The position numbers were made by a program, and so were the translations under genes. A DNA stretch of 53,388 nt, filler included, from Sluysia triapertura (lineage: Eukaryota), in assembly GCA_046118255.1 (NCBI GenBank). It is 4 parts of 4 records of this genome, joined end to end, with 100 filler letters (N's around TTAATTAATTAA, not from the genome) between each part and the next. Parts side by side here need not be neighbours in the genome. Positions count along the whole stretch, not along the records: positions 25,955 to 37,741 come from JBJNIA010170813.1; 3 more parts are not named here. The stretch is one strand, 5' to 3'. Shown here piece by piece: positions 25,955 to 37,741 of the stretch. The notes beneath the pieces are model-generated. The model had not been told where the DNA came from. It saw nothing but the letters and a program-made list of their open reading frames with translations, and made no database searches. The stretch's first letter is position 1, and every line of letters starts with the position of its first letter.

Positions 25955-26059
25955 TCTTACAGTTATCATCCTTAAACGTATTTTTATCATAATCACCATT
26001 CATCTATCTTGAAATCATTTTGGTTGAGTGAAATTTTCATTTTATGAATCATAAATTAA

Positions 26060-26610
26060 TTGATTGATGATGATACGTCTAAAAGCATGGATTCAGATGG
26101 AAAATTTGTAGTATCAACAGGTTGTAGATTAGCGAGAAAACTGAAAAAGATACCCTTTGATCCACGAATGACTGGGGCTTATTATGAAGCTAATTATGTT
26201 TACATTAAAAATTTTTCTACAAATAATTTAGATATTGTTGTATTTCTTTTGGATTACCGAAAAATTTTGTAATCAAGTAATAGATAACAAATGTAGAGTG
26301 ATCTTATGTAGCTTTTATTGACTGTAAATTTCTTTTTCTTTTTGAATTAATATATATGTATGTATTTTACATTGATCAATAACATTAGATATTTTAAAGT
26401 TATCATATATGCAAATTAATTTATGTTAAGTAAAGATTTATCGAATGATTCAACATTTGAACATTTTAAAATAATCCATATTTTGTTGTATGAATAAAGT
26501 TAGTAATCAAGTAATAGATGGCAAATGTAGAATGATTTTATGTAACTTTTATGGAGTTGACTGTGAGGTTCTTTTGTTTTTTGATTTGATAGATATATAC
26601 GATATAATAC
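26060..26610 (+). pseudogene. Decayed ORF with an internal 234-bp (78-codon) duplication
   Basis: 26269-26362 (GTAATCAAGTAATAGATAACAAATGTAGAGTGATCTTATGTAGC...) repeats at 26503-26602 (GTAATCAAGTAATAGATGGCAAATGTAGAATGATTTTATGTAAC...); translations NQVIDNKCRVILCSF vs NQVIDGKCRMILCNF. Confidence 0.5.
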
Positions 26611-28906
26611 TCATTAGTAAAACAAGAATTGTACATATAAATAATAACATCATGAGTTTTTATTATTTTTATTTTATAATACGAAATTATAACACAGTAA
26701 TTAAACTAATAAGAAATCTCAATATCAAAATGAATTAACAATTACTTTTAATAATAATGTATAATGTATAAATTCAATTGTTCCTTAATAACAATATAAT
26801 ATCTCAATAAATCTTTTAATTATCACAATTAATAACTATTTTTTTATAATAATATATCTTCAATACACAAATTTACAGTTACAAATCTCTGTCTATAAAA
26901 AACTAAATCTACAAAAATTCAGGGTTAACACAACACAATAAATGTTGACAACCGTATTAACAGCAATAAAATAACAAAACTCGAGCTTCCTAACCTTGAT
27001 AACAACAAAATCACTCTTTTTTAAATTTTAATCAATTGCTAATTATGAGTCCTCAGTCACAATGTTATTCGAAATTGTGTTGGCAGAGTGCCCCTAATGG
27101 AGACAAAGCTTTGTAAAGTCTTCTTCTGTCCAGCTAAGTTAATCTTTCTTTTTAATATTACTACCGAAATCTCACTGCTTAAGAAATTGGAAATTGGAAA
27201 AGACGGAAATAATTACTTGTTAAACCATTTCCTCTTTTTAGTCGATGATAAGCCGACCAATTTTAATAATTAAAATTCAGTAGTAATTTCCACTTGTGTC
27301 CAATTTCATTGCCTTCTGCAATTACCAAGGGATAATGGGATTTGTGATAAACTATCCACTTATATTTTCACATCCTTATTACATTAATATTCTGTTTTTA
27401 AAACAATTTATCAACTTAAAAGTAAAAATAAAATTAATGTAATACTAAATTGTTTTCATAGAAATCTTTTATATAATACGTTGTGCATAAACCATACGTC
27501 GCACTTTCATTTCAATGACACGTTGTTTATCTCTTCATGAACATTAATTAAATATACACTTTAATTATACTTAAACATCACATCATATATAAATTTAATT
27601 TTAGATTATAAAAATAATTAAAATAACTAATTTTTACGTTACCTGCGTTGACATGCTTTGTAACACTTCATCATTAAGAATACAAATAAAATCCAGCATT
27701 AATTCTAATGTTATTTTATCATGAGCAAACATTTTCCACTAAGTTATCAAATTAAACAATTTTTAATTAAATTAATTAATAAATGTTCTTTAATATTTTA
27801 ACAAATAGCACCTTATAAAGGGTTATTTCATCGTATCTTTCATTCTTTTGCTTTGATTCAAATATTTTATTATCAGAATTCATCACAATGTTTCATCACA
27901 ATGCATCACAATGATTCCTCAATGATACTTATTTTATTCTTATGTTATGACTTATAACCCCTCTATTCTTCCTTATCTTTAACTAAACCTAACATAAATA
28001 AAGACTTTGTTACTAATCTCCATGCTTCATTTGTACTGAAAGATAATTTAAAAGTTATAGTAAAGAATTATCAAATCAAGCTAATAATTAATTTACGATA
28101 TGTCTGACACTTTGACAATTTTAAAATATTTAAAGATATTTTATTTGACTTTTTAGATTCAAGTTTAATGATTCAATTTTATATACAAAGCGTGCTACTA
28201 TAAGACGATCCAAGAAGCATCATGACTATGTTATTGATAATAATATTAAAGTCACGTTTTTTCTTTAAGTAAATTACGTTATGATTTAATTAAAATTTGT
28301 AAATTAAAAGCCTCTCAAAATTTAAGTGCTGTTTGTCAAGTCTGGATCTAAAAATTTCATATAAATTTAATAATAATAATTAATAAAAACAATATAAAAA
28401 TTAATAAAATTATGAATATAATTATTAATTAAAATTAAAAAGTAATAATAATTGTTATTACTATTATAGAAATTAATAATAATAGAGATACTAATGATAA
28501 TGATGGAAGCCAAGGTGATTTACAGAGAAATTGTTTACCATAAGAAAGTTGGTAATAATAATAATATTCATAATCATAATAACTGATGAAACTATTGTTT
28601 TAATTAATTCTACAAGATTTATCAAGAAATTACTTAAGAAAATTAATTGGATAAACTAAAAGACATAGAATAAAGCCTTGTTAAGACATTATTCTGAATC
28701 CAATGTAAATTTAATCACAAAACGTAACGTTGACGCATTACGTATTGAAAATACTTTTCTCTGTTAGAAGTTATTAAAAGTGGAAAATTATATCAATGTG
28801 AGTATATATAAATGTATAAATGTCACTTTATGTGAAAAGAATGCTGAATATTGAAAAAGAATGTATATTTAAAAATTAATTAATCATACTGTTATGCTTC
28901 ATTAAA

Positions 28907-28987
28907 TGGACTGACCGGGATTCGAATCCTGGCCCTCTTACCGCGCAGCTGCGAGGTTCGATGCTTTGTCCACTGTGCTATTTGCCC
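28907..28987 (-). ncRNA. tRNA-derived sequence (SINE head or tRNA pseudogene)
   Basis: Minus strand has A-box TAGCACAGTGG and B-box GATTCGAATCCC, but acceptor (GGGCAAA/TCAGTCC) and T stems contain mismatches and the anticodon arm is not canonical; a GC-rich island in AT-rich DNA. Confidence 0.7.
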
Positions 28988-29656
28988 CGTCTGACAATTT
29001 CATTTTATTAGAGTCAATTATACTATCATTATTCTAAATGACACTTTGGGCCTATACCTCTACAATATGAATCATTATTAGAAGATTACGAACTTGGTGC
29101 GGTTTTCGCTTGACGTGACAAATATTTTTCGGCTAAATAAAGCCAAAGGGATTATACGTATTTTTATCGTGTCTGTTTATCGATAATCGATTAATGGTAC
29201 TAATTTTACAAAAATATAGCTGGAAGTTTGAACCAACAAAATGTGTCAGAGTAAACCATGTTGGAGTTATCTAAAAGTATTTTGTTAAAACCTTCATTCA
29301 AAATATGTTATTAAAATGGAATGAATTACGAAGGAACCCATCAGTTAGATCTAATATAATTAATAATAAAAATGTACAAAATGAGAATAATTAATATTTT
29401 TATTAATATTTTTATTGTTAAAAATTAATATTTTTAACAATAATAGCTAATAATGTGATTATTGATAATATTAACAATAATGGTAATAACAGTATCAGGT
29501 TGCCATCACGACCCTCTAAAATTATATAAATTATTATTAAAATTTTTTAAAATCATTAAAAAAATATTTTAAAGTTTCCAAATATCCAAAAAACATATAT
29601 TTTCCAAAAAAGAAAATAAAATTTTCAAAAAGGAAAATGAGTTTCTAAAATAGAAT

Positions 29657-29719
29657 AGAAACTTCTAGAATGTTCTAGAACATTCCATCAATTTCTTTTG
29701 GCTGATGATTAGTATATAA
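29657..29719 (+). promoter_or_regulatory. Six-pentamer heat-shock element followed by a TATA box
   Basis: aGAAa cTTCt aGAAt gTTCt aGAAc aTTCc (29657-29686) is six perfect alternating nGAAn units; TATATAA at 29713-29719. Confidence 0.7.
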
Positions 29720-30381
29720 CTAGCATCAGTACAATTTTCGATACACAATAGTTATTCATCTTATTTTCATCTTTGTTTGTTTCTAAACCATCTGTTTTGA
29801 CTAGTTTTGTTAGTTACGGATATTTGGTTCAGTCGTTATTCTGAAGAATTCTATTCAATCATATTGGATATTTGGCAAAAATTTTATTTCATGAATATGG
29901 TAATTTGTTTTTTTTGTAGGGAATTTTTATCTTCCTGGAAGATAAAAAAAAATTAAAATATTACGATAAAATCCCTACTTAAACTTTGTTTTTACCTTTA
30001 TCTACGAGAGGAATTTTAAATCAATAAAATTGTCGCGTCTTTGTACTTAATAATAATAGCAAATTAATATCGGTTAATTTATTTATTTATTTTATTTATT
30101 CAATATAAAATTATCACAAATTTCTTTATTTTGATGATGTTATTTATTCAACTCAAAGATTAAATTTTAAAATAAAATAAACAATAATTCAATAATTTAA
30201 TGATTACAAAAAAATCATATACAAATCTTTACTAAACAACGATAAAATGACTAAAACTACAAGATTAATAATAACGTTTAAAATATAATCAAGGATATAA
30301 CAGTCTACATGAAGAAACCAGGATGCAACAAACACTAAAAAAATATCAATATCTAGAAAGTTTAAAATAGTAATCTTGGTT

Positions 30382-30660
30382 AAATATTTTAAAAATAAAT
30401 TGGACAGTGTGTCTTCTACAAAATTATATTAAAATTAGCTAAAAATCAAATTATTAATTTAAAATATTTTAAAAATAAATTTGGCAGTGTCTCCCACGAA
30501 GTTAACTTAAATCGCTAAAAGTCAAATAATTAATTCAAAATATTTTAAAAATAAACTGGACAGGGTGTCTCCAGAAAGTTGAATTAAAATTGCTAAAAAC
30601 AAAATAATTAATTCAAAATAAAATAAATTTGTCTGGGTGTCCCACAAGATTATTCTTAAG
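30382..30660. repeat. Diverged tandem repeat, about 76-79-bp unit, about 3.5 copies
   Basis: Recurrent AAATATTTTAAAAATAAA-TGGACAG(G/T)GTGTC...AAAATT(A)GCTAAAA...AATTAATT; a further related copy near 41905-41955. Confidence 0.8.
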
Positions 30661-30849
30661 ATTCTTCCCAGAAAAACTTATTTATTTTATTTTATTTAAT
30701 AATTTAAAATAATAAAAAATAAAAATAAATAAAAAGATTACCATATACATGGATCTTCAATGCTGGTAGGATTATGTGAATGTATGACTGTGTTATTGTG
30801 TTGCAAAATTTTTAAAATTTTTATTTTATACTCTTTCATTATCCAATCA

Positions 30850-31205
30850 ATCCCAAGTCTCACAATCAAGCACTATCTCACACAAATAATCCAAACCTCT
30901 TTGAGAATCAGACCGACAATAACAACTTTGACAATTACATGGTAAGGTCTGTCAAACTTCATTAGGTACAAAACATATAAATTTGATTTATCATCAACCA
31001 TCATTTCCTTTTACTCTAATCAATCTATTTTTACTTAAATTACTTATCATATTAAAATAACAATCTATAAAATTGTTAACCTACATAAAAATAATGAATT
31101 TAATTTCACATTTTAGAATTTAATTAATTTTTCTATTTTTCACACCCAATTTTCTAATGAAAAATGTTTTAAGGTTTTTATTATTAAACGAACCATTCTA
31201 CAAAC
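30850..31205 (-). mobile_element. Decayed Ty3/Gypsy integrase
   Basis: *NGSFNNKNLKTFFIRKLGVK (cf. DNGxxFxxxxFxxFxxKLGIK) followed by LMKFDRPYHVIVKV (GPY/F motif); the downstream non-coding tract 30110-30660 is homologous to 41560-41960. Confidence 0.5.
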
Positions 31206-32280
31206 ATTTCGAACTCACTTATAGATTCTCGTCTTTCATAGTAATCATCTCATATTCCATTCATCACATTTTCATCACTCTAAGTATAAAAAAATTCAAC
31301 ATTCAATAATTAAAAATTAATTAAAATTTGACTTTGCTCAATATTAAGGCTTTCTTGCATAGCTTCATCGAAAGGTCTTTCAAAACAAATACATAGATTT
31401 CCACATTCAAGTTATTCACAAAAATATACATTTTGTTAATTAAGTTAATTAAGTTAATTAAGATTTTAATTAATAGTCCATTTTTTGACTTAATCTTATT
31501 TTATGTTTAAAGCTATTTAGCATTTTATAAGACATTCAGGAGGCTCTAGATGTTTTCACCTTCACCTCTCTGATTCCTTTTTCTACTTCTTCATGCTAAT
31601 TATTACTATGTTAAACTTATCTTTATTATTTTGAACAAAGATTTTATTTCTCAAATATTTTAACGATTTTATAATATCACTCGAAGATCTTATATGCTTA
31701 TCAAGGTTTCAAGAATACTTAAAGATTAATAAGATCTTAAATGATCTAAAGGTTCCAAAGTTCAAAGGCACCTTAATGCTTCGAAAGGTTTTTTAAGTCC
31801 ATTTCAAGCTTTCTTAAGGTCTCAAACCCTTATATAGGTCTTTGGAACCTTAAGATATTCAGTACCTGTTAGGATCATTATAAATGCTTTCTTTATCATG
31901 ATTCTTATTTCAACAATGTTCAATTCATTTATTTGTATAAGTTCTTCCTTTATTTTATGATTTTATGTTTCTTTCTCCTGATCTACAGCTGGGCAATCCC
32001 AACATTACTGTTAATAATATTATTATTATTATTATGAAGCGATTAATTTATAAAATTAAATTGTAAAATATATTATTTTACTCATTAGAATCTAAATAAA
32101 TGGAATTACTACTGTTTACGAAAAATATTTATTGTTTTATTTTAAAATTAAATTATAAATATTATTATTATTAAAATTATTATTATTAAAATTATAAATA
32201 ATATTAATATTATTGCAATAATAATAATAATTATTATTGCAATAATATTGTTTTGTAAATATGTATTTTTTATTGTTCTA

Positions 32281-32790
32281 TTGTTTAATTATTTTATAAT
32301 TACTCACTTAACCAAAAATATATAATTAATTGACATATAATTACTTTTTGAATATATTCATTATAAATAAATAGAGATTGAATTACAATTATATTATTCC
32401 ATGAAAAGTTAATCTATCAAAAAAAACCCGCACCAAAGGAAAGAATAGATAATTCAGAGAAGTGTTTAATAATATTAATACTAACATTATATCATTTTGT
32501 TATTGTAGAATAATATTTAAAGAATTCATTATCTAACATAAAAATAAAGTTAATTGCATTACCAAGTAATTTTTATATTTTTATAAGTTTGAACTTACAA
32601 GTTTTACTATTTTAAAGGCTAAAAGAGAAAATATGTAATACGATTCCACCTTCAGAACAAATTATTTTAGGTATTATTTTAATCAGTGAGAATTATCCTA
32701 GTACATTCATATTTGATAGACAAAACTTGAAGGAATAAGAAACATCATTAGAAAATGCAAATATAAACCTCACACTAGGATTCAGCACAT
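32281..32790 (+). pseudogene. Probable decayed tandem ubiquitin-like (Ubl-Ubl) ORF
   Basis: Across stops and frameshifts: FIITHLTKNI*LIDI*..FEYIHYK*IEIELQ / HEKLIYQKKP...TLYHFVIV, then IKIKLIALPSNFYIF / KFELTSFTILK / LKEKICNTIPPSEQIILG...RQNLKE*ETSLENANINLTLG. Each half parallels ubiquitin IFVKTLTGKTITLEV..DTIENVKAKI...IPPDQQRLIFAGK...TLSDYNI..ESTLHLVL. Confidence 0.4.
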
Positions 32791-33311
32791 AATAACATCG
32801 CCACATTGCTGTATGAAAAATTATCAAAGTTTATTTAATGATAAATAGATCCAAAAAAATAAAACCTTATTTTCTATCTCCATAAGTACTCAAAGGCGTT
32901 TTCATATGTAATATTTATTTAAAAGTTATCATTATTGGATTTCAACTGGATATAAAAAATAAAATAATTTGCACTTAACTACTAAGTAAGTAATATTTAT
33001 TAATAAGTTGACAATAAAAGCACTAAACCTAAGATAATTGTGTAATTTCGATAAGAAATTGAATAAGTTTAGGTAATTAGTTAATAATAAAATCAGGTAA
33101 AATTGCGTAAGATCTCAAAACAGATGTGTGTGCGAGAAAGTTGAAAATAATTTGTAATTAATTATTGTCAAATAGTATTTAATAGAAATAAATACAACTA
33201 CAACAAATAACTTTAGATTTTATATATTTTAAAATATAATTAAAAATTTATCTAAACTGAAATTATTTAATATTTTTGTTAACATTTTTATAGTAATTAA
33301 ACATCAACTAA

Positions 33312-34862
33312 ATGAAGAAGTATCAGGATATTTTAGATCAAAATTTAATAAAAATATCAGTTTTTAAACTAACTGATACAAATGATGAAGATAATTGTAT
33401 TCAGTGTTATGGTCCATGTTCAACTGTATTAAGTTGTAGTCATTATTTTTGTAATGAATGTATAGATGATAACATTGCCAACATAAAAAGTGAAGGTTTA
33501 GAAAAAAATGAAAAATGTCCATATTGTTTAAAAAATGTTACAACAGTTAGTACATCACGACCTTATGCAGTGAATTGGCAAAAAATATCAGAAATAAGAA
33601 ATCTCCCACATGAATTCTTGGAAATATATAAAACTAAACTTAAATGGTTATTGATATCAAAAAATTTGGATTTAACAGATGATTTTATGGCTCGATTTTC
33701 TGATAATATCAAATATATGGAATTATCACGCAGAAAGAATTTACCACTTGATTTTTTAACGAAATATAAATATAGATTACATCTTCGATTTTATATTATC
33801 ACCAATATGGATGATTTGTCTAATTATGAACAATTTATTGATTGGAAACTTGTATCAACTCTTTGCTATTTCCCTTTTTTAAACGATTTTACGTCCAAAA
33901 AAATATATTGGAATTATAGCAAATGCTTTGAAAGCGATATTTTACAAAGTCATTACGATAAAATAAATTGGCATTTGCCTGGAAATGATGATCCCGCTCC
34001 TGAATATATGGAATTTATTAAACATAAACTAGATTGGCAGAAAACTAGCAAGAAATATAGAAATCCTGAATATATAATAAATAATTATTATGAATATATA
34101 GATTGGAACTCTATGTCAAAAAATAAAAGTATTAATATCAACATTATGCGTAAATATAAGCATAAATTAAATTGGAAGAATTTTAATATCCTCTATACAG
34201 AAGATATAATAGAAGAATTTGAAGACTTGATTGATTGGGATAATGTGTCCAGATCACGAGAATTGAATATCGAAATTGTTTCTAAATATTCAAACAAAAT
34301 AAACTGGAATATCATTTGTGCCAAAAATATCGAAGATGTATTTGATAACATTAAAGATAAAATTGATTGGAATGTTATTTCTAAAAATTGTGATCTTTAT
34401 TTTCTTGATCCTCAATGTTACACAAACATAGATTGGAAAAGTCAATCAAAAAATATTTCCTATTTTATTTGGGAGAACACAAATTACGACAATATTATTC
34501 ATTGGGACATATTTTGGAGTAAAAATAGATCTGCAGTTAATTTTATGAATAATTATTGTCACAAAATAAACTGGAATTGTCTATCTCAAAATCCGTATCT
34601 TAAATTACAAACAATTGATATATACAAAGACAAATTTAATTGGGAAGATATATCAAAATATACGAAATTAAGAAACATTGATACTTTCATGCACGAGAAT
34701 ATACGATGGGACATAGTTGCTCTGAGAAATGATTTGAAGCCATATTTTTGTGCTTTATTCAAAAGTAAGCTTGATAATAATATTTTAGTTAAAAATCCAA
34801 TAATAAATGATGAATTTATGAAAACAGTCGAACATATTAATACAACATTACTTCCAGAATAA
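33312..34862 (+). CDS. RING-HC (C3HC4) finger plus about 19 tryptophan repeats; putative E3 ubiquitin ligase resembling entomopoxvirus/NCLDV W-repeat proteins
   Basis: Uninterrupted 516-codon ORF in DNA where other ORFs are short. RING: CIQC-x9-CSH-x2-CNEC-x18-CPYC. Then 20-23-aa repeats of the form (I/L)(D/N)WxxISxNxxLxxxFIxxYxDK. Start context TAAATG at 33309-33314. Confidence 0.85.
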   Translation: MKKYQDILDQNLIKISVFKLTDTNDEDNCIQCYGPCSTVLSCSHYFCNECIDDNIANIKSEGLEKNEKCPYCLKNVTTVSTSRPYAVNWQKISEIRNLPHEFLEIYKTKLKWLLISKNLDLTDDFMARFSDNIKYMELSRRKNLPLDFLTKYKYRLHLRFYIITNMDDLSNYEQFIDWKLVSTLCYFPFLNDFTSKKIYWNYSKCFESDILQSHYDKINWHLPGNDDPAPEYMEFIKHKLDWQKTSKKYRNPEYIINNYYEYIDWNSMSKNKSININIMRKYKHKLNWKNFNILYTEDIIEEFEDLIDWDNVSRSRELNIEIVSKYSNKINWNIICAKNIEDVFDNIKDKIDWNVISKNCDLYFLDPQCYTNIDWKSQSKNISYFIWENTNYDNIIHWDIFWSKNRSAVNFMNNYCHKINWNCLSQNPYLKLQTIDIYKDKFNWEDISKYTKLRNIDTFMHENIRWDIVALRNDLKPYFCALFKSKLDNNILVKNPIINDEFMKTVEHINTTLLPE

Positions 34863-34930
34863 ATAATTCTAAATTGTTAATATTATTTTAATTTAATAAA
34901 TTTTAAATGCTTAAATTTTTAATAGTTGAT

Positions 34931-35780
34931 ATGGTAAAAATCATTTCTTGTACTTAGGACACATTTGTAAGTGGATGTTATGTAAATCACCAATTTTGTA
35001 AAGATGAAAGCTGCAAATATTAAAGATCACATTTAAGAAAAATCATAAAATAAACTTAAAATTCTCGAATCATTTTTATGAATTATTTTCAATGCTATAT
35101 TTGTAAAGAGCATAAAATATGACCACCCGAAAAACTTATCTGCGCCCATTTTCTTTTCAACCCACTAATTTAAAATTTATTCTCTTATGATTGCAGATTA
35201 AGCAAAACCACATCAAGTAGTACTTTGGGGCGAGCATAAGTTTGAAGGTATCTGATTATAAAATTTGTATTGTATTATGCAATATTGATTTAGTTTTAAC
35301 CCCAATATATCAATATCAATTTTCGATAATGTAATTAAATAGAAATATATTACAAATGTATAATGTAAAATCTGAAAATGCATTCTTCAAATAATAAATT
35401 TGTGCTTATTATTGCATAAAATTTAGGAGTAAGCTATCATTACAATTTAATCATATAAGCTTGATTTTAGGACTATTTTAAGAATAGTTATTATTAATTA
35501 GAAACTACTGTTGTTAAATATGATGAAATAAAATTAACTGAGTTAAAACATAGCAATACTTTCATTACTTCTAATTCCAATGGTATTTTTTGTACTTTGG
35601 TATTTCTTTCTAAGTTACAACAAATTGCTATTAATATTAAAAATTGCAAACCTGCATTGACCCAAAATATAAATTTTATGAATAACGATACGATTAGTTT
35701 TTGTAAACCTTTTTATAATGGTAAATTTTATAAATCATTAAATGTATTTTTTCTATAGATTGATTGCATAATTAATTTAA
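34931..35780 (+). pseudogene. Probable decayed RING + W-repeat paralogue (same strand)
   Basis: GCYVNHQFCKDESC and FQCYICKEH (RING-like ligands), then FSFNPNISISIFDNV (35289), YKLDFRTILR and NKIN* (TGA where TGG is expected, 35527-35541), resembling the repeats of the intact ORF. Confidence 0.45.
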
Positions 35781-35949
35781 GATATATGTAATATACATAT
35801 AAATAAATCAAATATTTTCAAGTCTGCATTTGTATCATAACAAAACTTAATTTTAATTATAATTGAAATTACTACCGCGAAATAATATAAAACCATAACG
35901 TTGTAAATTTTGCATTTTGTTGAATGAAATTTAAAACGATATTTAGAAA

Positions 35950-36830
35950 TATTTCTCAAAGTAATAAAGTAAGTATTTTAAAAATAAATTTTTTCACATC
36001 GTAACTCCATCTTCGATTCTGATACAAAAATCTTTCTTTGATACTTTGAATCTTTTTTTCTTTCATTATCTTCAATGAATTTCATAGTGAAATTGTCTTT
36101 AAAATGCTTGGCTCAATATTTTAAATATCAAACAGTTCTTGGAGTTCTTCTGTAATGAAAAACTTAAATTTTGGAATTTAATGTCCTGGAACTCTAGAAT
36201 GAGATCTTCACTCAAAACTTAAATGCTATTCCAATTCACTATTACCGATTCATTAAATTAAATTAATTAATTCATGAAATTCTCGGATTTATGATAATTG
36301 TGAACTAGAAATTTGTTTTTCCAAAAGTTCTTATTTTCCAAGAACGAAAATTAATCTTTTCTTGATATTTTTGATAAATTTCCTTCAAGTGATATTCTAT
36401 TCGGCAATTAAATATATGTCATATCGAAATATTTTGTACACAAAAAAAAGTCGATACTTTATTTGTTACTTCATAACATGCGTTGATATTCCATTGCATA
36501 TTTTGATCAAAGTAATAAATGATAATTTTACTCTCCATTTTATAAGATGCTTTAAACTCTCTGAAGGTAAGTTAAACGTAGATTGAAAAATGAATTTTGG
36601 GTGAATCGGTAAATTCATTTTAATATTCGTGCATAAAAAGATATAGTAATACAGTATTTCATCTTAGATCTGTTTATATTTCTGTATGTAGTCGTTTATC
36701 TCTCATATAGGACACATAGAAACGGCATGAGAAAATTTTACAATGTCATAATCCCATCGGCTTGTATAGATAGTGACAAAAATACTCGGTCTAGCTAGTG
36801 ATACTTTCTTTCGCATCCAAGATAATATTG
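35950..36830 (-). pseudogene. Decayed RING + W-repeat paralogue (convergent strand)
   Basis: YYLGCERKYH*, MCPI* (TGA for Cys, 36714-36703), FNLPSESLKHLIKW, EIYQKYQEKINF, SQLS*IREFHELIN, VNWNSI*VLSEDLILEFQD (36239-36183) and DNFTMKFIEDNE appear in an order matching the intact gene architecture. Confidence 0.6.
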
Positions 36831-37167
36831 ATGTTTAAAATGTTACTTGGTGATTAACAGATTTTATTTGCCATGAACAAATATAGTGTTGTATAAAAAA
36901 AATAAAAATAAACAGAGAGAGAGAGAGATAGATTAATAATAAGGATAAAAAAGAAAATAACTATAATAATGATAACAATTATGAGATTATTATGTTTACT
37001 AATATAGAATTGTTGAAATTTATTATGAAATTTTATCATAAAATTATTATTAAAGTTATTATAAAAGTTATCATTTGATATTTATTATATAACAATAATG
37101 ATTATAATTTTTTACAATTTTTTAATATGATATGAATCGTAATAATAATAACAATAGCTGATGATAG

Positions 37168-37625
37168 TTAGATGTGATGGTCGTTTTTACTTTTAAATGA
37201 GTTTAGTAGTTTGTTTAATAGTTCGTGTATTTGTGGAGTGTTTTTATGCGATGAATTGTGATGAATTATGATGGATTTTATGTGATGAGTAATAATTTTG
37301 CAATATATCAAAGATCTTGTAAGATTGTTAACAATATAATTGTAACAAAAATAAATAAAATAATGAGTATATCCATGCACCAAATGATGAATTTCACAAC
37401 GACTATCTGCGAAATTCTCTGCACTTATTCATGATCTGTAATACATTGCTTCTTCTATCTCTTTTTAATAAGAATACGCTCTCAAATGCAACTCATATCC
37501 TAAGAACAAATACTAAATTCAAGAATGTAGTCTTAAAAGTCGCATCAGATCACTATTCAAAACAATTTCCTTCAGAAACAAATTCTTTAACTTCTATAAA
37601 ATGGTATCTTCTGAGAGATCACTTG
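37168..37625 (-). pseudogene. Single-frame decayed ORF with several in-frame stops, unknown family
   Basis: DLSEDTIL*KLKNLFLKEIVLNSDLMRLLRLHS*I*YLFLGYELHLRAYSY*KEIEEAMYYRS*ISAENFADSRCEIHHLVHGYTHYF continues in frame into the 37168-37383 ORF. Confidence 0.3.
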
Positions 37626-37741
37626 TCTCAAACAAAACATATAAATACCATACATATTGTTAGTGTTTTTCCTTATTCCTAACAAATTATCTGTCGGGTC
37701 AGTTCGCTTAGTATATACGCTTTATACCAACTTGGAGACGT

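Follow-up and report, generated by a model that had tools for sequence, protein, structure and literature searches.

Poxviruses redirect host ubiquitination with p28/N1R RING E3 ubiquitin ligases and with ankyrin-repeat/PRANC (F-box-like) proteins. The tryptophan (Trp) repeat family, which occurs in entomopoxviruses and other giant viruses as well as in jumbo phages, is a widespread one, with 1513 representatives after clustering at 50%; it still lacks a known function, a dedicated Pfam model and a solved structure. In Amsacta moorei entomopoxvirus, the family member AMV254 combines an F-box with Trp repeats (PMC7728225), and ant genomes hold endogenous viral elements (EVEs) that are most similar to a Trp-repeat gene, over half of all the EVEs found in ants being reported as intact open reading frames (ORFs) (PMC6540820). 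Here we describe an ORF from Sluysia triapertura (assembly GCA_046118255.1) at positions 33312..34862 (+ strand), which is a new RING-fused member of this known virus-associated repeat family and, judged from its sequence, probably encodes a virus-derived ubiquitin ligase. Positions count along the window, the whole 53,388-nt stretch of DNA from which the analysis started; the piece analysed comprised positions 25955-37741 (11,787 nt, without N; record JBJNIA010170813.1).

The ORF is a real, intact gene. It is a complete single-exon frame of 516 codons plus a TAA stop, its ATG stands immediately after an in-frame TAA, and it is the longest open stretch of the piece, the next stop-to-stop stretches being 107 and 102 codons long. 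GC content per 500 nt ranged from 16 to 29% across the piece with a mean of about 23-24%, and the trinucleotide frequencies of the flanks gave a stop-codon frequency of 0.086 per codon. The probability of 516 open codons was 5e-21, or ~1e-16 once all frames and positions were counted, and the longest ORF in shuffled sequence (n=200) averaged 87 codons with a maximum of 130. Taken together with the family match described below, this chance probability establishes that the ORF is real. GC content at codon positions 1/2/3 was 30/25/20.5%, a coding-like gradient. An earlier note on this DNA had claimed an open frame of 516 codons with all eight RING ligands intact in about 75% AT DNA, and both parts were borne out, the former by a GC content of 23-25% together with the shuffled sequences and the latter by a regular-expression match.

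The encoded protein (516 aa, 62.6 kDa, isoelectric point 6.4) is predicted to be soluble. Neither a signal peptide nor a transmembrane segment was found in it (maximum Kyte-Doolittle 19-residue mean 0.74), and its first 25 residues, with a mean hydropathy of -0.53, lack a hydrophobic segment; the protein would therefore work within the cell in which it is made. At the start codon we observed TAAATG (33306-33314), the poxvirus late-initiator motif. As a sign of a poxvirus late promoter it was dropped, because the same context occurs at 7.6% of the + strand ATGs in the piece; the related genes on the metagenomic contigs L006 and L007, described below, lack the TAAATG start context.

Near the N-terminus lies a C3HC4 RING finger (residues 29-72; 33396..33527, + strand) with eight zinc ligands in canonical spacing. 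The regular expression C-x2-C-x9-39-C-x1-3-H-x2-3-C-x2-C-x4-48-C-x2-C was satisfied by all eight ligands, with the actual spacing C29-x2-C32-x9-C42-x-H44-x2-C47-x2-C50-x18-C69-x2-C72. Compared with Pfam, the protein matched seven RING families and, weakly, a Bromodomain, all eight at E values of 1 or less. Against PDB sequences, the RING segment matched RNF141 at an E value of 0.0013, and nearly all other matches were RING E3s. A model of the RING segment alone reached a predicted local distance difference test score (pLDDT) of 56, and the top 50 of 50 PDB fold matches were RING or U-box domains, with template-modelling (TM) scores of at most 0.60 and E values of at least 0.09. The NCBIfam and PADLOC scans of the protein gave 0 matches each.

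Behind the RING follow about 16-17 degenerate Trp repeats with a period of 22-23 residues (residues ~78-480; 33543..34751, + strand). The protein contains 18 Trp residues, of which 16 are in register at a spacing of 20-23 residues, and the repeats share the core motif h-x-W-x2-h-S-x-N-x2-L, in which Ser stands at position +4 in 10 of 16 repeats. The array is followed by a C-terminal helical tail without the repeat motif (residues 481-516; 34752..34859, + strand; pLDDT 50-66), for which the model placed helices at residues 473-488, 491-494 and 496-513. The AlphaFold2 full-length model, built with fragments of 63 relatives, had a mean pLDDT of 66; it exceeded 90 at residues 90-150 and 230-360, where short alternating helices form a solenoid. 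No analogue of the array model was found among solved structures (best E 0.98). Structure prediction had been expected in the earlier note to give a RING plus an alpha-solenoid: the alpha-helical solenoid did appear over the repeats, while the RING was modelled at low confidence only. Among the repeats, identity at third codon positions was 0.39 versus 0.34 by chance, so that the internal repeats are old, though their divergence may predate any transfer. The ratio of nonsynonymous to synonymous divergence (dN/dS) among the internal repeats was ~0.8; reading selection from these repeats proved uninformative, as the distances are saturated.

The repeats of the ORF matched phrog_3532, a family without assigned function, at an E value of 1.3e-36. 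An exhaustive HMMER search over 1.84 billion representatives recovered 1513 relatives at E <=1e-3, 158 of them at <=1e-10 and none at <=1e-30; the best had an E value of 6e-27 and 30% identity over ~110 residues, and a word-index search returned six weak relatives only. None of the ten best relative clusters was meaningfully named, and most relatives were unnamed metagenome proteins. With tblastn against phage genomes, we found Listeria phage LPJP1 (2e-14) and gp559 of Bacillus phage G, in which a neighbouring gene is annotated "tryptophan repeat gene family" (PMC12484599). Of the 41 matches that a Foldseek search against viral structures (BFVD) yielded at E <=1e-3, the best with names were MSV205 (8e-12), a protein of Mythimna separata entomopoxvirus (MySEV; 2.5e-11), MSV027 (3.4e-10) and AMV029 (1.4e-7), with MSV029 also present, and proteins of Marseillevirus, Pithovirus, Orpheovirus and Megaviridae as well as gp558-563 of phage G came after them. 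Global TM scores of these matches were only 0.2-0.4, as expected of flexible solenoids. The repeat of the ORF is thus the tryptophan repeat of entomopoxviruses, giant viruses and jumbo phages, a link that the earlier note did not make, and since this is a known virus-associated family, a viral origin becomes the leading hypothesis.

Close relatives were absent from the collections searched: none was found above ~30% identity to the ORF protein among 15 billion proteins, and neither an orthologue nor an identical copy was found in any collection, the exact protein look-up included. At the DNA level, a 31-mer from the ORF had no match in JGI metagenome contigs, in IMG/VR or in 185,579 prokaryote genomes, and scanning viral contigs for peptide patterns of the ORF protein likewise gave nothing.

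The combination of RING and Trp repeats recurs. In a Pfam search of 111 relatives, RING was, apart from a weak CYNS_N, the sole extra domain type found repeatedly, and two metagenomic relatives carried it. The first, P0058 (L006:1118-1744), is the sole collinear relative, with the RING followed by repeats (BLASTP 6e-19, 26% identity), and its gene sits 0.5 kb downstream of a Pox_VLTF3 gene (E 1e-20, above cut-off). The contig that carries both, L006 (ENA ERZ25070786 ctg129633l), is 16 kb long and ORF-poor outside positions 161-1744 at the contig end; L006:161-1744 gives the impression of giant-virus DNA inserted into eukaryotic sequence, a setting that resembles that of the ORF. We noticed that the called product P0058 is not exactly translatable from the L006 locus. 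The second relative, P0047 (L007:821-2278), has regular repeats and a C-terminal RING-H2 (zf-RING_2, 5e-11); its 2.5-kb contig (Logan SRR8856338) is densely coding, and its GC content of 17% is within the entomopoxvirus range.

Other relatives lie on contigs of several kinds. L009, which carries relative P0008, is a giant-virus-like contig with MATH, RING, SET and ankyrin genes; L005 is densely packed and virus-like, with TBP, DNA-polymerase small-subunit domain and UvdE genes; and L002 and L008 are phage-like. Two further observations concern the repeat relatives P0007-P0123: one of this set has an OspI-like glutamine deamidase domain (E 1.3e-6), and P0007 itself scores above the cut-off of Pfam LRV_2 (40 bits vs 27), which hints at a kinship between the Trp repeat and the leucine-rich variant (LRV) repeat.

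The surroundings of the ORF bear on its origin. About 11.8 kb of ORF-poor sequence with 23% GC looks like eukaryotic intergenic sequence, and the presence of just one lone ORF across 11.8 kb speaks against the genome of a virus or a bacterium. The nearest named relatives and those with informative contexts are viral, alongside the cellular-looking contig L001 and unnamed metagenome proteins. The explanation we favour, with slightly better than even confidence, is that a RING plus Trp-repeat gene of a large DNA virus of the nucleocytoplasmic (NCLDV) type is now endogenous in a eukaryotic genome and would act as a single-chain E3. Capture from a virus is the leading origin, and we rate it at about even chances. 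Under this explanation, a gene captured from an NCLDV-type virus into a eukaryotic genome would have become an endogenous viral gene; the RING would dock an E2 charged with ubiquitin, while the target protein would be held and presented by the Trp-repeat solenoid, giving a single-chain RING E3 ubiquitin ligase. Such a mechanism is a reasonable proposal and the likeliest one. The earlier note had likewise proposed a RING E3 whose W-repeat solenoid serves as the substrate arm, and that part agrees with the zinc ligands, the RING-type matches, the helical solenoid and the recurrent RING fusions; its further proposal that the gene has been co-opted did not gain the same support.

Several observations weigh against a viral RING E3. 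Every Pfam RING match was sub-threshold, the best being zf-RING_5 with an E value of 0.0017 and 18.7 bits vs a cut-off of 27.9, and both structure models were of low confidence over the RING (pLDDT <50 in the full-length model, 56 in the segment model). The position two residues after the first cysteine (C1+2), which in E2-binding RINGs is usually Ile, Leu or Val, is Gln in the ORF, with Ile at C1+1. The array is irregular, its period being interrupted at residues 113-177 and 375-402, and its repeats are far more degenerate than those of the viral and phage relatives, with a mean pairwise identity of 20%; two of its stretches were poorly modelled, with pLDDT <50 at residues 158-201 and 365-427. 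The family is not solely viral, since relative P0001 lies on the compact eukaryote-like contig L001, whose genes encode a chitin synthase, an RGS protein, a DNA ligase and an ABC transporter. Lastly, no other viral gene, insertion boundary, terminal inverted repeat (TIR), long terminal repeat (LTR) or poly-A was identified around the ORF. Candidate boundaries of mobile elements (TIR, LTR, target-site duplication, poly-A) had been considered there and were dropped as AT-rich chance matches only.

Whether the frame stands open through selection or through youth decides between the two alternatives that survive best. Of all possible substitutions in the ORF, 6.3% create a stop. The probability that a neutral copy is still open is 0.38, 0.14, 0.05 and 0.007 at 1, 2, 3 and 5% divergence, indels not counted. 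Because a neutral copy can stay open at low divergence, intactness alone is weak evidence for selection; only an insertion with an age of more than a few per cent divergence would make it an argument for selection, and neutral survival fits an age below ~1-3%.

A young neutral insertion, that is, a recent viral or horizontally acquired gene which has not yet decayed and has no host function, we regard as possible, though somewhat unlikely. It would explain an open frame at 1% or 2% neutral divergence, and it agrees with the isolation of the gene in gene-empty DNA. A closest relative at ~30% identity among 15 billion proteins is what sporadic capture from an unsampled virus would leave, and over half of the EVEs found in ants were reported to be intact ORFs (PMC6540820). 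On the other side, neither insertion scars nor co-integrated viral genes were found around the ORF, and the degeneracy of the array relative to the viral relatives suggests that any homogenised state lies some time back.

Domestication is rather doubtful in our judgement, being a little less probable than recent neutral insertion. On this view, purifying selection in the host has long preserved the gene as a working E3 ligase, which would serve in antiviral defence or in the manipulation of a host. Here the completeness of the ORF counts in its favour, from an ATG right behind a stop through to its own stop, and so does the retention of eight ligands and 16 in-register Trp residues in spite of old repeats that have diverged at the DNA level; an old neutral copy would be expected to be broken because 6.3% of substitutions make a stop. 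The GC content of the ORF also matches that of the flanks. However, the divergence of the repeats may predate the transfer, and an AT-rich donor, either entomopoxvirus-like or like L007 with its 17% GC, would match the flanks without amelioration. Entomopoxvirus genomes have a GC content of ~18%. The fuller version, in which an AT-rich eukaryote (perhaps an insect, perhaps a parasite) captured the gene from an entomopoxvirus-like or other giant virus and domesticated it as a RING E3 whose solenoid recognises viral or host targets, we consider unlikely.

Still less probable is a non-viral origin, in which an AT-rich eukaryote, possibly parasitic, would have the ORF as a native, lineage-specific gene from a fast-evolving, effector-like RING family comparable to the phylloxera SPRINGs. 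A member of the repeat family does lie on the compact eukaryote-like contig L001, and expansions of RING effectors are known in a gall insect (PMC6892190). Yet the ORF protein lacks the signal peptide that is by definition present in the SPRINGs of that insect, no paralogue was found in the piece 25955-37741, and the nearest named relatives are viral. That the ORF arose by chance or is an artefact of a non-standard code is refuted by the probability of ~1e-16, by shuffled sequences that never gave more than 130 codons, by the significant family match and by genetic codes 4 and 6, under which nothing specific opens in the flanks. These codes, with TGA read as Trp or TAA/TAG as Gln, were tried on the piece together with single-stop reassignments, and the ORF stayed the longest throughout; a deviant code was accordingly dropped as an explanation for the broken look of the neighbouring sequence.

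The DNA around the ORF was searched for relatives of the gene and for other elements. The earlier note had described decayed paralogues and decayed transposable elements (TEs) nearby, and neither was recovered within the piece; they presumably lie in other, unrelated parts of the window. The domestication proposal of the note rests on this contrast, which the piece itself does not show. For paralogues, tblastn returned the ORF itself and matches at E >=0.77, and a family hidden Markov model run on the six-frame translation (X at stops) scored the ORF at 5.6e-171 and elsewhere gave nothing better than E 0.13. For remnants of TE or viral proteins, 62 stop-to-stop pieces of >=40 aa from the flanks gave no Pfam match better than E 0.026, and thus no recognisable TE protein. 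No host gene or junction was identified in the flanks, Rfam and tRNA scans of the piece gave 0 matches, and a bacterial promoter and terminator scan showed no enrichment. Compared with a first-order Markov model, the flanks held a surplus of medium open stretches: 65 of >=40 codons against 47 +/- 6 expected, and 5 of >=80 codons against 1.4 expected. Either the erosion of former coding sequence or a patchy composition could account for this surplus. Four of the five stretches of >=80 codons cluster downstream of the ORF, at 35498-37679, none with a Pfam match.

Three minor features lie upstream of the ORF. A tRNA-like relic occupies 28905-28995 on the - strand; its A box reads TAGCACAGTGG and its B box GGATTCGAATCC, and there is no pairing between the acceptor ends. 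Neither ARAGORN nor Rfam called it, and by appearance it is either a dead tRNA gene or the head portion of a tRNA-derived short interspersed nuclear element (SINE). A search of JGI metagenome contigs for a 24-mer taken from the relic gave no match. A minisatellite at 30382-30620 consists of 3.1 copies of a 76-nt unit (80% matches, TRF score 316). Finally, a 75-nt direct duplication occupies 26247-26321 and 26481-26555, with the copies 80% identical and 234 nt apart, and the second copy (26481-26555) overlaps an open stretch of 82-87 codons.

For the Trp repeat family as a whole, the recurrent fusion to ligase domains (RING in the ORF and in two metagenomic relatives, F-box in AMV254) suggests that the array is a target-binding module and points to hijacking of the ubiquitin system. 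If the ORF is indeed a domesticated E3, this would be the first function for the family, as the substrate-recognition module of a ubiquitin ligase, and viral machinery for hijacking ubiquitin would have been put to host use. If the ORF proves conserved and expressed, it would make a clean case of co-option; otherwise it would be one more sporadic endogenous viral ORF.

Among known systems, the entomopoxvirus Trp repeat family (MSV205, MSV027, MSV029, AMV029) resembles the ORF in its tandem repeats of ~23 residues, its conserved Trp and its AT-richness, whereas the ORF shares ~20-24% identity with it, has more degenerate repeats and stands in an apparently non-viral genome context. AMV254 has its array fused to an F-box, a ubiquitin-ligase adaptor (PMC7728225), and the ORF has an N-terminal C3HC4 RING instead. 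Phage G gp558-563, LPJP1 and phrog_3532 belong with the ORF to a common repeat family by profile, tblastn and fold, but the phage G and LPJP1 proteins have regular 'LSEEFI' repeats, and no RING occurred in the phage matches inspected. The two metagenomic relatives come nearest in architecture, as both have the two-domain combination of the ORF. P0058 is collinear, lies beside Pox_VLTF3 and is set in ORF-poor DNA; it differs in sharing 26% identity with the ORF, in being short (208-227 aa) and in missing the second RING cysteine. In P0047 the RING is a C-terminal RING-H2, in contrast to the N-terminal C3HC4 RING of the ORF.

Outside the family, the SPRINGs of grape phylloxera are RING proteins proposed as host-manipulating insect effectors (PMC6892190); they are small and have signal peptides, unlike the ORF protein with its 516 aa, its Trp repeats and its lack of a signal peptide. 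The LRV repeats (PF25591) have a similar repeat length and short alternating helices, although the ORF protein itself has no LRV match. With the poxvirus hijackers, p28/N1R and the ankyrin/PRANC proteins, the ORF product differs in repeat type and domain order, but by analogy it may share their logic, in which a ligase or adaptor domain is joined to repeats that select the target.

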